From assembly GCA_965603825.1 (NCBI GenBank), contig CBFDEM010000056.1:558001-622000 (forward strand): DNA of 64,000 bases, written 5' to 3'. Position 1 is the stretch's first letter, and every line of letters starts with the position of its first letter. Positions 25,701 through 45,295 of the stretch are shown in pieces. The stretch comes from Blepharisma stoltei ATCC 30299 (lineage: Eukaryota; Protista; Ciliophora). Below the pieces are notes generated by a model, which did no database searches, was not told the origin of the DNA, and worked only from the letters and a program-made list of their open reading frames with translations. Both the position numbers and the translations under genes were made by a program.

Positions 25701-28700
25701 CAGGAATTTTTATAGAAGTCTGTTCATCTGATGCTTTGGCTGAAATTTCTTCTGCTTTTTTCTCAGAACTTTTTATAGAAGTCTGTTCATCTGATGCTTT
25801 GGCTGAACTTTCTTCTGCTTTTTTCTCAGGACTTTTTATAGAAGTCTGTTCATCGGATGCTTTGACTGAACTTTCTTCTGCTTTTTTCTCAGGAATTTTT
25901 ATAGAAGTCTGTTCATCGGATGCTTTGGCTGAAATTTCATCTGCCTTTTTCTCAGGACTTTTTATAGAAGTCTGTTCATCTGATGCTTTGGCTGAACTTT
26001 CTTCTGCTTTTTTCTCAGGATTTTTTATAGAAGTCTGTTCATCGATTGCTTTGGCTGAACTTTCTTCTGCTTTTTTCTCAGGAATTTTTATAGAAGCCTG
26101 TTCATCGTGCTTTTTAGATTCCTTTTTCTCTTCTTCTTCTTTTTTGGTAGTCTGGGCTGAAGCTTTCTCAAGTTTACTTTCTTTTGCTTTTTGAATTTGC
26201 TCACTTGTGGCTCCCTGAGACTTTTGCTCTTTTTCTGAATTAAATCCTTCTGTTGATTGAACTGTAGATGCTTTAGCCGAATTTTTGCTTTTTGTTTCTT
26301 CTTCTCCTCCTTTCAAAGATCCTTCTGTGTTTTGAAGTGGAGTAGTTTGAGCTTTACTGGGCTCTTCCGCAATAGCTTGGCTATTAGATTCCTCTTTAGA
26401 TTTTTGAGTAGGTTCAAAACTATCCTTATTAGATTTTTCAGGCTTTTCTTCTACTTTTTGAATAATATCAGGTATTGTTTTAGTTTTGTCTTCTTCTATA
26501 GATTTTTCTTTCAACTTGTCAGTAGACCCTGCACTTGACTTCGTCTCTTCAATTACTTTTTGAGCGGGTTCAGGGATTGATTGAGCTTTGCTTGCTTCTT
26601 CAGCTTTTTCTTTCGGATTTTGAGCAGGCTCTACATTTGTATTAGTCTGTTCTTTTAATTTTTTAATCGGCTCATGGATTTCTTGAGCTTTACCTACCTC
26701 TTCTGATTTTTCTTTAGAGCTTTGAGTAGGCTCAGCACTTTTCTTGGTCTGCTCACTCGATATTTCAGCTGGCTGAGAAATTGCTTGAGTTTTGGCTACT
26801 TCCTCAGTTTTTTCTTTCAACTTTTCACCAGATTCCACGTTTGTTTTCTTCTCCTCATTTGATTTTTGAGCTAACTCAGGAGTTAATTGACTCCCGCTTG
26901 ATTCTTCAGTTTTTTCTTTAGATTTTTGAGCAGATTCAGCTGATTGCTTTTTGCCTACTTCTCAATCATTTTCGTTTGTTTTTAACACAGGATCTGGAAT
27001 TATTTGTGATGTCTGAGAGGAGGACTTGCTTTCTTCAACAACAGGCTTAGCTTCTACTGTTGATTTTTTTTCATGTTTTGCCTCAGATTTCATCTCTTCT
27101 TTGTCTTCTTCTTTCGGAGCTTGGTCAGCAGCATGAGCTTGTTTAACTTCATCTACTTTAGCAGCTTCATTATTTTTTGCATCTGCACTTTTTTGCGCTG
27201 GGGCATTTTGTTCTTGCTCTTTTTCTTTTGCTATCTCAGGCTTAGATAAAGGAGCTTCCTCTTTAATTTTTGCCTGAGGTGCCTCTGTCAGCTTCTGGGT
27301 TTCTTTTCTAGCTTTAGATTCTTCTTGCCCTTGGTGAGAGGAAATCTCAGTTTGGTTTGGAACTTCTGCTTTTTTATTTTTGCTTTCTTCTACATTTTTT
27401 ATTGGCTCACTTGGAGTTGATGAATCAGCTTTTGACTTAGACTCGACTGAAGGCGCTTTTGCTTCTTCTTTTCTCGGCAATTCCTTAGAATCCTCGTGAG
27501 AGACTAATTGTTTGTCTTTTTGCTGAGAAGGATTCTCTGGAGCATGAGATTCATTAACTGCCTCTGGAGTTGGGGAAGCATCCTTGGAGAGCTTGGACTC
27601 TTCTATTTTTGGCTGCTGAGAAGTATTTTCAGGCACTTTAGCTGCAGTTTCTTCAGTTTTCTTCGTAGAATCCTTTATAGAAGTTTGCTCAACTTGCTTT
27701 TTAGAGGCTTTTTTCTCTTCTTCTGAATTGGGAGCAGGCTGGGCTGGAATTTTCTCAGGTTCACCCTCTTTTGCCTTTTGAATTGGCTCAATAGTAGTTT
27801 TTTGAGGCTTTTCCTGTTTCCCTGTCTTTGATTCTTCATTTGATGCAACGTTAAGTCCTTTAGACGATTCAGTATCTTTTTTTTCTTCTTTCTCTGCTTT
27901 CACGACTCCTTCTGTTTTTTGGGTCTGAGCTTTGCTTGACTCTTCAGAAGTAGATTTCTGTGGAGACTCTCCTTTTTGTTCAGCAACTTTAGGAGTATTT
28001 TTATCTGTAGCTTCTTCTGAAATATTGGTTGGCTTAGAAGACTTATCCCCTTCTATTTTTTGTACTGGCTTGACCCCTGTATCTTGCTCCTTACTTGATT
28101 GAATCTTTTCTTTGGTTTCTTCATTAATATTCTGAGATGTAGTAGCTTGGCCTGACTTATTATCTTCCTTTTTAGTTGGGTCTGCGCTTTTTGGTGTTGC
28201 TACAGTTTTATCTTGCTCTTTTGCTGTTTCAGACTTTGACAAAGGCATTTCATCTTTGCTTTTTGATTGAGATTTCTCAGACTCTTTTGGGTTAGGTTCT
28301 TCAGTTTTCTTTTGGGGGGTAGGAATATTCTCATTTTGCTTAAGCGCTTCATCTGATTTATGTTTGTTTTCTTCTGCTTTTGATATTGAATCATTCGATA
28401 CAGCTGATTTTTCTTTATTTTCCTCAACTTTTTTCGAAGAAATTTTATCTTTTGTCTCTTCTGCCTGTCCTGTCGCTGACTTTTGCTGAGGGGAACTTTC
28501 AATAACTTTAGATTGTTGGGCTTCTTCAGCTTTAGCAGTTTCATCAGAGCTCTTCAATTTTCTTAGTTCTTCTCTATCAAGATGCCCTCTTGCTCCTGCC
28601 TTAATTGCAAGATCGTTTATTTGCGAGCCACTTTGACTGACTTCCTTATTTTCTTCAATTGATATTTTTCCAGATGCTTGCTCAGATTCTTTTTTATTTG

Positions 28701-29112
28701 TTACATTTTCAGACTTACTTTCATGAACAGGAGCACTTTTTGGTGCTTCTGATGATACAGATTTAGTCTTTGCTTCTTCTGCACTTTCAGCAGGTTTGAT
28801 CTTTTGAGAGGATTCTTGGCTTGATTTTTTATTATCTTCTTTGGCTGTTGTTTTAGCAGACGTATTTTCAGTAGAGCCTGGTATCGCAGATGTTTGAGAT
28901 TTGGTCTCTTCATTGGATTTTTTGGATGACTCTGCTGATGTGTTAGCAGGAATTTTGGATTCTTCTTGATGAGCTTGGGATGGATCAGAAATCTTTGATT
29001 TATCTGACTGTGGTTGACTTTCAGCTTGATTTACAGTTCCAGCCCCTGATTTTGGCTGCTGGATAGATGACGAATTTTCTGAACTTTCTTTGGCGCTATT
29101 TTTTCCTTCCAT
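22786..29112 (-). CDS. Giant (about 2108 aa) Glu/Lys/Ser-rich protein with IQ motifs, tandem repeats, coiled coil and C-terminal membrane anchor
   Basis: ORFs 26962..29112 and 22786..26838 are in frame with no TAA/TAG between them and join through TGA 26962-26964. IQSFARKYL twice, IQSVARKHL once; terminal LWMLIGIGVICAIIISNLII. Confidence 0.82.
23989..24132 (-). repeat. 24-bp coding tandem repeat, about 6 copies (AKKAEEIE)
   Basis: Visible in both DNA and translation. Confidence 0.9.
25412..26107 (-). repeat. 63-bp coding minisatellite, about 11 near-identical copies (DEQTSIKSPEKKAEESSAKAS)
   Basis: Plus-strand unit GATGCTTTGGCTGAACTTTCTTCTGCTTTTTTCTCAGGAATTTTTATAGAAGCCTGTTCATCG repeated head to tail without spacers. 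Confidence 0.97.
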
Positions 29113-41243: not shown

Positions 41244-43244
41244 ATGGGTCTCGGATCATATAGCACACCTGTACATCAGTATAGCCAAGCTATTTCCGGT
41301 GAAGAAAAACCCGGAGAAACTCCAATTTATGTAAGTCCTTTAGCAAAACCATATCTTTACACTCCCTTAGAAACAGGAGCCACAACTTTGTATCAAAATT
41401 TTCAAGTGAGTGTAAAAAATCATGGAGAAAAGCCATTCCTAGGGACACGTAGAGTAAAAAATGACGGCTCTTATGGAGAGTATATATGAAAGACCTATGA
41501 CGAAGTATCAGAGCTTTCAATGAAAATTGGTTCGGGACTGCATGCTCTAGGTCTCACAGAGAAAAATGATGAAAATTTGTCAATTTTAGGGATTTATGCA
41601 AAAACTTCTGAAGAATGGATGATTACAGATATAGCTGCAATGAGTCAAAATATTACTATTGTTCCGATTTATGAGGTTCAACAGCCTGAAACAATTAGAT
41701 TTATCATTAATCAGACCCAAATGAAGGCTGTGGTCTGCTCTGTCATGCAACTTGAAAAATTAATGTCAATAAAAGCAGATGGAAGTCTACCAAGTTTAAG
41801 GATTATTATTGTGTTTCCTGAAATTAATGAAGACATAAAAGCTAGATGTTCAAGCATAGGAGTTGATGTTTATAGTCTCCAAGAAGTTGCAAATCTGTCC
41901 CAGGAAATTGTGGAATCTCCTCCAAAGCAAAGCGACGTTTATACAATTTGCTATACAAGTGGCACCACAGGGAGGTCAAAAGGTGCAATAATCACCCATT
42001 CAAATGTGATTGCTACCATCGCTGGGATTTCTGCGTCTGGGTTTTTATTTAATCCAAATGACAGTCATTTATCATATTTGCCATTAGCCCATATGCTCGA
42101 AAGGCTTATTTCTCAGATGATAATTTTCTATGGGGCAAATATAGGCTTCTATTCAGGTGATGTGAATAATATAAAAGACGATCTATCAGCTCTCAAGCCG
42201 ACGATTTTTGTATCAGTTCCCAGACTTTATAATAGATTTTATGACCTTATGATTCAGCAGTTCAATAATATGACAGGGATTAAAAAATTCATAGCTGACA
42301 GAGCGTTGGCGTGAAAAATGTCAAGCTATCATACAGATGGAAGCGTAAGCAATAGGTTCTGGGATACCTTGGTTTTCAACAAAATCAGAAATAACTTAGG
42401 CGGAAGGGTCAGATTCATGCTTACAGGCTCAGCACCTATTTCTGGAGAAGTTTTAAGCTTTTTGAGGGTAGCATTTGCATGCCCAATTGTTGAAGGCTAC
42501 GGACAAACTGAATCTTGCGCTGGAAGCATGGTTACGCGCCCTACAGATAATGAATGTGGGCATGTAGGTGGTCCTTTACCTTCTTTAGAGGTAAAACTTG
42601 TCGATGTACCTGATATGAAATATCTATGCACTGATACAGATGAAACTGGAACATCAGCCCCTAGAGGAGAAATTTGCATAAGAGGGCTTACAGTCTTTAA
42701 GGGTTACTATAAAGAGCCTGAGCACACTAGCGAGGCTATTGACTCTGAAGGGTGGCTTCATACAGGTGACATAGCAACAAGGCTGCCACATAATGGCGCC
42801 TTTAAAATTATTGACAGAATAAAAAACTTCTTTAAGCTTGCGCAAGGTGAATATGTGGCAGTAGAAAAAATAGAGCTGATGTATACCAAAAGCAAATTTA
42901 TCAGTCAAATCTTTGTATATGGGGATTCATTCCAATCGTTTTTGGTTGGAGTGGTGGTCCCTGATGAAGAATATATAAGAAATTCATGGTTAGGGGAGCA
43001 TGGAATTAGCCCTGATACGCCATTTGATGTCATCTGCAAGAGAAAAGACTTAAAACATGATATTTTAGAAGATATGAAAAGAATTTCTAATGAAGCTGGG
43101 CTGTTTGGTTATGAGCAAGTAAGAAAAATTCATCTGGAGCCAATTCCTTGGAGCACTGATGATTTGATTACTCCAACCCAAAAACTGATGCATTTTAAGG
43201 CAAAACTTAAATATCAAGACGTAATAGCAGAACTTTATTCTTAA
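41244..43244 (+). CDS. Long-chain acyl-CoA synthetase
   Basis: CYTSGTTGRSKG, SYLPLAH, EGYGQTE, GWLHTGDI, IIDRIKNFFKLAQGEYVA. Three ORFs join through TGA 41487 and 42312. Confidence 0.97.
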
Positions 43245-43267
43245 GTAATGCATTAATTATGGCAAAA

Positions 43268-45295
43268 TTACATTCAGCATGGCTCTGCGATCTGTTGGGA
43301 ATTATCCTTTTCACCAATTGAATTCTGTCTAAATGATATTGAGCTTGCTTTCCTCCTTTCGCTGCTTTCTCTTGCTTGCTCTTTTTCCCACCTCTTTTTC
43401 CTTTCATAATTCATCATTAATTGATCCCAAACTGCTTTGTTTACGACCCCATTCACTAACATTCCCGCTTCTTCCTGGAACCTTTTAACTAAGGCTTCAG
43501 TTTTTTTCCCATAAATTCCATCAGCTTTATGCCTCGTCCCAAGGGAGCTATTAAGTGCAGCTTGTAGCAGTTTGACGTCATCAGGGTCGTTTTCTGGTTT
43601 TAATAAGGAAATGTTGTTTTTAAATGGTGGGATTTGAATCATTTGGCGCTCTGACATTTCATTCATAAAACTTTTCATGAGTTCTCTGTGCTGGGAGTCT
43701 TTTGACTGGATTTCAATAGGTGAGGTATTTCCGCTAGAAAAGGAAGGGCTAGGAATTTCATGAGAGGAGAATTCCCGTATGATATTTTCAAAGCTGCTGT
43801 TTCGAGAGCCCATCCCAGAGCTTATAGGAGTGTAAGCTGTTGAGTCATCGTGAATGTGCTCAAGCTTTTCTCGGATTACCGATGCAATTTTGGAGATAAA
43901 AGAAGGCCGAAGATTAAATGCTGAAGCCATTTCTTCAGCTACTCCTTCAGGAGTGTCTGCATGAAGGTTAAAAACAAAATCCAATTTTATAGGAGAAACT
44001 TTGCCAGTTGCGGCATCTCTGTTTCCGATATTGATTGAGATTTTTATTTCTGTGTCCTGCGGCTCTTGCGGAGCATTAGCGAACTGTATGATATCAGGAC
44101 GATGCACATTTTTTTTATTTTCATTGATGACTGTTCGACTCATATTTTCTGGTATTTCTTTTTCCTTCCCTACATGACTTTGGATTTCTTTTTCTTTCAA
44201 GGTCTCTTTGGTTTTTGATAAAGTTGCAGGCTTTTCCCTCACTGAACTATTTTTTTCCTCTTTTTCATTATTTTTTGGCATTGAATGAGGAGACTCGTTT
44301 TTTATTTCTTCATAATCTATATGTGGAAGAATTTCTGGGGTTTTGTGCTCAAGGTTTTCTTCAGATTTCAGCGCAATGGGGTGGTGGACTCTTTCATCAT
44401 TTTCATCAATAAATAGAAATGGATGATCTAATAGTTCTTGCGCGTATGGTCTTTGGTCAACAGGAGCTAGACAGAGCTCAATAAATTCTTTTACTTCTTT
44501 GTCAGCAATTCTTTCAAGGACGAGTGGCTTAATTCCGTTCGTGACTTTTCTATAGACTTCAACAGGAGTCTTGCATTCGGAATATGGAATTGCGTGGGTG
44601 CACATTTCGAGTAAGCACAAGCCGAATGAGTATATGTCGACTGTCGGGCCATATCTTTCTTCGAATAGCTCAGGAGCCATGTATTGAGGGGTTCCAAGAA
44701 CAGTCTTATTGTGAGAGGTCCTCATAAAAGTGGATAGACCTAAGTCGCCGATTCTGATATCTCCAGTGCTTGAACTTACGAAAATATTGTCGCATTTTAG
44801 ATCTCTGTGAATGACTGGGTAAGGTTTCTGTGAGTGCAAATAATGGAGCCCATTCAAAATATCTCTGCATCATTGTTTAATGACCCGAAGATGTGGAGAT
44901 CTGATTTTTTTCAAATATTGCTTCAAAGAGCCACCTGTCATGATTTCAGTGATAAATATGACTTCTTCTCTTTCTTTATTGTGCCATGCTTTGATAAAAT
45001 GTATGATATTTGGGTGCATTAATTTTTGAATCATCATAATTTCGTCTCGAACTTTTTCTTTCTCGATTTTGCTCATTCCTCCAGTTTTAACAACATTTCA
45101 CGCGACTTCGCAGCCGGTATCATTGTCAATAGCTCGGTATACTGTTTTATACGCACCACTGCCTATTTCTTCATTGAACTAAATAAAGGGTACTCGAGAA
45201 AAGCGGCCTTTTGGAGAGTCTTCTACGATTTTGTAGTGAGTCTCTTTGATTTTGTTGAGGTCTTCTTCGTTTTCGCCTTCTTCTTGGCTTTTCAT
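43268..45295 (-). CDS. WNK: WNK-family Ser/Thr kinase with CCT-like domain and C-terminal peptidoglycan-binding-like domain
   Basis: GSGAYKTVY (Lys in subdomain I), EVAWN, IHRDLKCDNIF, IGDLGL. Intron 45179..45193. TGA at 45098, 44870 and 43274. TAA at 43268-43270. Confidence 0.93.

Follow-up and report, generated by a model that had tools for sequence, protein, structure and literature searches.

Why should a WNK-type kinase in the ciliate Blepharisma stoltei end in a PG_binding_1 domain (PGBD, PF01471), the three-helix module of phage endolysins and bacterial wall enzymes? The earlier note on this DNA proposed a horizontally acquired module that could link sensing of bacterial wall fragments or endosymbionts to kinase signalling in a bacterivore, and knew of no other WNK with such a domain. 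The Blepharisma gene is found on the minus strand of the window, by which we mean the whole stretch of 64,000 nucleotides that was analysed. We consider here whether the gene is genuine, where the fusion may have come from and what the domain may do.

Gene structure and kinase identity

Blepharisma stoltei reads UGA as Trp and has 15-nt introns (PMC9942806). Read in this way, the locus has these features:

43268-45295, minus strand: WNK gene with PGBD, 670 amino acids in total, UGA read as Trp, one intron
45194-45295, minus strand: exon 1, ATG at 45295, 34 codons; by translation an acidic N-terminus and no signal peptide
45179-45193, minus strand: intron, 15 nt, GT..AG, with an in-frame TAA inside
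43268-45178, minus strand: exon 2, 636 codons, TGA for Trp at three of them
44414-45178, minus strand: WNK kinase domain, from motifs, homology and the kinase tree
44057-44413, minus strand: charged, fast-evolving linker, dN/dS about 0.2, low pLDDT in a poor single-sequence model
43877-44056, minus strand: CCT-like (OSR1_C-type) module, PF12202 E 8e-4, 19.9 bits, under the cut-off of 22.4
43418-43582, minus strand: PG_binding_1 three-helix domain, with a conserved lead-in to about 43630
43349-43408, minus strand: charged helix continuing helix 3, perhaps a coiled coil, and longer in the myzozoan clade
43268-43270, minus strand: stop codon TAA, the preceding TGA at 43276-43274 being Trp

This gene is genuine and transcribed. 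The 15 letters at 45179 are missing from transcript contigs in 4 of 4 runs, all from a single study, so the intron is spliced; the runs were taken as RNA by guess, and they plausibly are RNA because they skip this intron. A transcript-like contig (X4 record 16) covers positions 43276-44983, from the kinase C-lobe through the PGBD, with zero differences, and one open frame runs through the kinase C-lobe, the CCT-like segment and a 60-residue PGBD segment (minus strand, about 43597-43418). At the other end of the protein, the exon 1 product matches the N-terminal start of a paralogous protein (P0122).

A long-chain acyl-CoA synthetase gene (window 41244-43244, plus strand) lies tail-to-tail with the WNK gene, with the stops 24 nt apart and the synthetase poly(A) site at 43267 abutting the WNK stop. 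The same convergent arrangement is kept in a relative that carries the syntenic ortholog (L015). Elsewhere in the window, a complete rRNA unit (18S, 5.8S and 28S; 9481-14615, plus strand) accounts for the GC-rich stretch, and an open frame of 2108 codons (22786-29112, minus strand) holds a long tandem repeat region at about 25250-26650.

The kinase was called a WNK from the letters alone, and this identity holds. As in animal and plant WNKs (the WNK/NRBP family), the lysine sits in the glycine loop (45163-45137, with GSGAYK at 45163) and there is none in subdomain II, which reads VAWN at 45106 with its Trp encoded by the TGA at 45100. The catalytic motifs are intact (HRD at 44809, DLG at 44746, APE at about 44670), the best named matches of the domain are WNKs, and the kinase tree groups it with WNKs. 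The animal and plant enzymes also share the long low-complexity linkers and the charged C-terminal helix, and in them a CCT-like module follows the kinase. The CCT-like segment, likewise proposed earlier, gives a weak PF12202 match in this protein and exceeds the cut-off in four paralogs. Homology searches and folding were run on the separate exon pieces rather than on the spliced, joined protein, and the single-sequence model of a 531-residue piece is poor (pLDDT 37). The highest 19-residue hydropathy value (KD19) is 1.16, within the kinase, and there is no membrane span or signal peptide; the protein is predicted to be soluble and cytosolic.

The PG_binding_1 domain and its carriers

The peptidoglycan-binding pattern that the earlier note recognised is a significant one: the PF01471 profile scores 50.3 bits on 43582-43418 (E 2.8e-13; cut-off 23), and the PDB sequence matches are all PGBD-bearing wall enzymes, including endolysins. 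The predicted structure bears it out. An alignment-based AF2 model is a three-helix bundle (pLDDT 88) that matches the solved PGBDs of SleB, SleC, CtpB and endolysins with TM scores of 0.7-0.84 (Foldseek probability 1.0, though E >0.001), and 10 of 10 Atlas structure matches are PF01471. Fold and core motifs (LQ..L, DG.FG..T, V..FQ, DG.V) are thus those of the domains in phage endolysins (phiKZ gp144, AP3gp15, LysT84) and wall enzymes (SleB, SleC, Zn DD-peptidase, CtpB), but unlike these the alveolate domain is joined to a cytosolic eukaryotic kinase, without a hydrolase domain or export signal. The matrix metalloproteinase pro-domain is a eukaryotic PGBD-like fold without known peptidoglycan binding. 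The model matches proMMP-2 weakly (TM 0.51, probability 0.16), and the alveolate PGBD is far closer to the prokaryotic ones.

At the level of sequence, the PGBD is demonstrably under strong purifying selection in Blepharisma. Its pN against the closest relatives is 0.06-0.14 with synonymous sites saturated, and in the same comparison it is better conserved than the CCT-like module and far better than the linker.

A search of the genome (41.5 Mb, 64 contigs) places 5 of 5 PGBDs downstream of a WNK kinase domain, and four further WNKs lack the domain. Homology searches find a kinase with PF01471 in dozens of homologous proteins, among them heterotrich carriers from B. japonicum, Climacostomum virens, Fabrea salina and Stentor coeruleus (SteCoe_13555, 25049 and 32824). 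Heterotrich WNKs lacking the PGBD nest within those that bear it in the kinase tree, as with the C18 paralog and P0019 (100/98), and therefore represent losses of the domain. The C18 and C2 paralogs (L021, L022) stop directly after the CCT-like module, with no PGBD remnant found downstream of either, and because P0019, their closest relative, retains the PGBD, the loss is a clean one.

The pairing extends beyond heterotrichs. Four proteins (P0176, P0177, P0181, P0231), from genes with about 50% GC, ordinary stop codons and longer introns, combine a WNK kinase, a CCT-like module and PF01471 over the cut-off. Scanning metagenomes with an alignment of their kinases added L031, L034, L036 and L040. 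In L031 and L034 a related C-terminal domain was detected by family-built profiles; L034 has no Pfam match by itself, and L031 is weak evidence because a frameshift separates its kinase from its tail. The L034 transcript opens with the final 11 nt of the spliced leader used by dinoflagellates; the Perkinsus leader has a different sequence at the matching position (PMC3101222). L036 and L040 are ciliate WNKs of 1761 residues when TAR is read as Gln; in their PGBDs (L036 4480-4790, L040 4470-4750) an insertion of 30 residues separates helix 1 from the first Asp-Gly repeat, and the second half alone exceeds the Pfam cut-off. For most metagenomic carriers the taxon is deduced from their placement in the tree, their genetic code and a leader rather than from names. 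The myzozoan-type WNK on a freshwater metagenome contig that is possibly perkinsid (L025) has tandem secreted-looking metallophosphoesterase genes upstream (383-4594).

The distribution has gaps and a boundary. The PGBD is missing from the Euplotes-like and rumen-type WNKs of ciliates and from several others. Among 97 named non-alveolate WNKs (plant, stramenopile, rhizarian, fungal, red-algal and heterolobosean), 0 of 97 score above the reversed-sequence maximum (3.1 vs 3.7 bits). On the alveolate side the survey covered heterotrichs, ciliates other than Tetrahymena and Paramecium, and myzozoan-like rows other than apicomplexans and named Perkinsus.

What had looked like a novelty of Blepharisma, or of bacterivores, is instead a family that spans heterotrichs, other ciliates and dinoflagellate-like protists. 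The view that no WNK was known to carry a PGBD survives in that our literature search, which took in the Stentor kinome preprint apart from its Table 3 (extra domains), found no paper on the combination; it does not survive for the databases, where automatic annotation already shows the kinase and PF01471 pair. That preprint (10.1101/168187) counts 10 WNKs, and the text outside that table does not mention peptidoglycan. WNK plus PGBD is apparently an undescribed WNK variant and probably alveolate-wide. Two findings appear to be new here: that ciliates reading TAR as Gln have it, and that it also occurs in a clade of six members, with deduced taxa, that is sister to the ciliate WNKs.

Origin of the fusion

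We favour a single fusion, no later than the alveolate ancestor, followed by repeated losses, with a probability of roughly 0.7 and with the carriers' taxa partly inferred. A PGBD of prokaryote or phage type would have joined the C-terminal tail of a WNK once, at the latest in the ancestor shared by ciliates and myzozoans, and would then have been kept under purifying selection, as seen in Blepharisma, and lost repeatedly, as seen in some paralogs. In the kinase tree, built from a 61-row set less 25 near-duplicate or long rows, the six myzozoan-like sequences group as one clade (100/100) that is sister to all ciliate WNKs (ciliates 96/88), and the two group together (97/93) apart from stramenopiles, Plasmodiophora, plants and others. 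The pairing occurs in ciliates and in this sister clade and in none of the 97 non-alveolate WNKs, so that the fusion is probably older than the divergence of ciliates and myzozoans; ciliates and dinoflagellates would then have separated only after a prokaryote-type domain had been captured.

For the domain itself, a single heterotrich/myzozoan origin is not rejected by a PGBD tree of 61 columns with weak support (79/71) and a limited outgroup: the AU value is 0.59, and constraining the tree improves it by 10.5 lnL. The best prokaryote and phage matches are about 40% identical, and a phage tblastn search returned scattered matches of 38-47% with no donor preferred. A search of representative sequences brought up only unnamed multi-repeat PGBD proteins, which point to no donor. 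Of the horizontal acquisition first proposed, the prokaryote-type fold stands, while no donor is singled out, and any transfer must be ancient because the pairing spans heterotrichs, other ciliates and dinoflagellate-like protists.

The domain might instead have been gained independently two or three times, in heterotrichs, in TAR=Gln ciliates and in myzozoans, or drawn from a stock of older eukaryotic PGBDs, not from a fresh prokaryotic transfer. The patchiness among ciliates, the insertion in the L036 and L040 domains and the weakly supported domain tree all suit independent gains, and the modest identity to prokaryote and phage domains, with no donor favoured, suits these as well as an older stock. 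We nevertheless regard this as unlikely. In all carriers the PGBD occupies the identical position, between the CCT module and the charged helix; a profile-profile comparison of heterotrich and myzozoan domains gives a probability of 97.7 (E 1.8e-12); and the one-clade test is not rejected. An artefact of misassembly, contamination or chance matching is ruled out, for practical purposes, by the single open frame, the spliced transcript contigs and the five paralogs, as well as by the syntenic L015 ortholog beside the same acyl-CoA synthetase gene and a GC3 in the PGBD equal to that of the kinase part (0.39 vs 0.36).

Possible roles of the domain

The absence of a signal peptide and the single PGBD copy make a repurposed interaction, docking or anchoring module likelier than a peptidoglycan sensor, and we give this reading about even odds. 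On this view the protein would belong to a WNK subfamily spread across alveolates and would work as an active kinase in the cytosol. Its PGBD and the following charged helix may bind a host protein or cortical structure, or may cluster the kinase, and by analogy with WNK biology such docking or clustering could place trans-autophosphorylation and substrate access at the right site. Other WNKs have oligomerising tails at the position where alveolate WNKs have the PGBD, and tail-driven clustering of WNKs is described in a preprint (10.1101/2022.01.10.475707).

Residue conservation speaks to both sides of this question. We compared 40 heterotrich and six myzozoan domains, column by column, with 973 domains from unnamed multi-repeat PGBD proteins. 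The heterotrich domains keep the hydrophobic core and have Asp at the two repeat positions in 72% and 75% of cases, vs 68% and 70% in this comparison set, which is skewed towards the query and whose bacterial origin is assumed. The second-repeat Gly and Thr, present in 61% and 88% of the comparison domains, are replaced and are not among the top residues in heterotrichs. In the protein at 43268-45295 itself, the first Asp-Gly-x-x-Gly-x-x-Thr repeat is intact, and the second has Asn for Asp and neither Gly nor Thr. Both Asp are replaced in 6 of 6 myzozoan domains; such a clade, in which the fold persists without its fingerprint, is in line with repurposing for docking or clustering. Against a role in docking only, the heterotrich Asp are kept as often as in the comparison set at positions that correspond, by motif, to the two aspartates which, with an upstream arginine, are the proposed peptidoglycan recognition residues of AP3gp15 (PMC5674055).

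This retention of the core and of both Asp-Gly positions is an argument for a cytosolic peptidoglycan sensor, at least in heterotrichs, in which the domain would bind wall fragments that leave the food vacuoles or the surface of a cytoplasmic endosymbiont and recruit or activate the WNK. Strong purifying selection on the PGBD, best structural matches that are wall enzymes, and the bacterial diet of heterotrichs would also suit such a sensor. However, prey walls are located in the vacuole lumen, and a protein without a signal peptide has no route there; the single PGBD copy, the Asn and the missing Gly and Thr in the second repeat of this paralog, the loss of both Asp in myzozoan copies and the loss of the whole domain from several close heterotrich paralogs weigh against it too. 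We consider a sensor possible but doubtful. The more specific proposal, that a cytosolic WNK inherited from the alveolate ancestor directly detects bacterial peptidoglycan leaking from prey or carried by endosymbionts, with the domain functional in heterotrichs and degenerate in myzozoans, is a shade less likely again. If true, it would be a protist counterpart of NOD-type sensing made from a prokaryotic wall-binding domain.

Least probable of the three is that the PGBD binds another GlcNAc-type or structural glycan, or a glycoprotein, of the host itself, such as in the cortex or in cyst wall precursors. Its sugar-binding ancestry with altered surface residues and its spread through the alveolates, a group with a cortical alveolar system in common, would be in keeping with such a ligand, but glycans of this kind are mostly luminal and the kinase is cytosolic.

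Bacterial PASTA-domain Ser/Thr kinases (PknB, PrkC, StkP) are membrane receptors with extracellular PASTA repeats. The alveolate WNKs resemble them in concept, as a kinase joined to a module of wall-binding type, but differ in the fold of that module, in the WNK-type kinase and in having neither a membrane span nor a signal peptide.

No match to SLC12/AA_permease, or to OSR1_C outside the WNK loci, was found in the genome, where a PF03522 control also gave no signal. The kinase therefore probably signals by a route other than the SPAK/OSR1-SLC12 one of animals. For WNK signalling in protists without SPAK/OSR1 or cation-chloride cotransporters, the PGBD offers a handle on the inputs. Cytosolic peptidoglycan sensing by a protist is directly testable, since Stentor and Blepharisma are amenable to RNAi and localisation. 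The myzozoan-type domains (P0176, P0177, P0181, P0231 and L034) have one further peculiarity relative to phage and bacterial PF01471 domains, a conserved Cys in place of Gly after an aromatic residue (5 of 6), which may be a redox or metal site.
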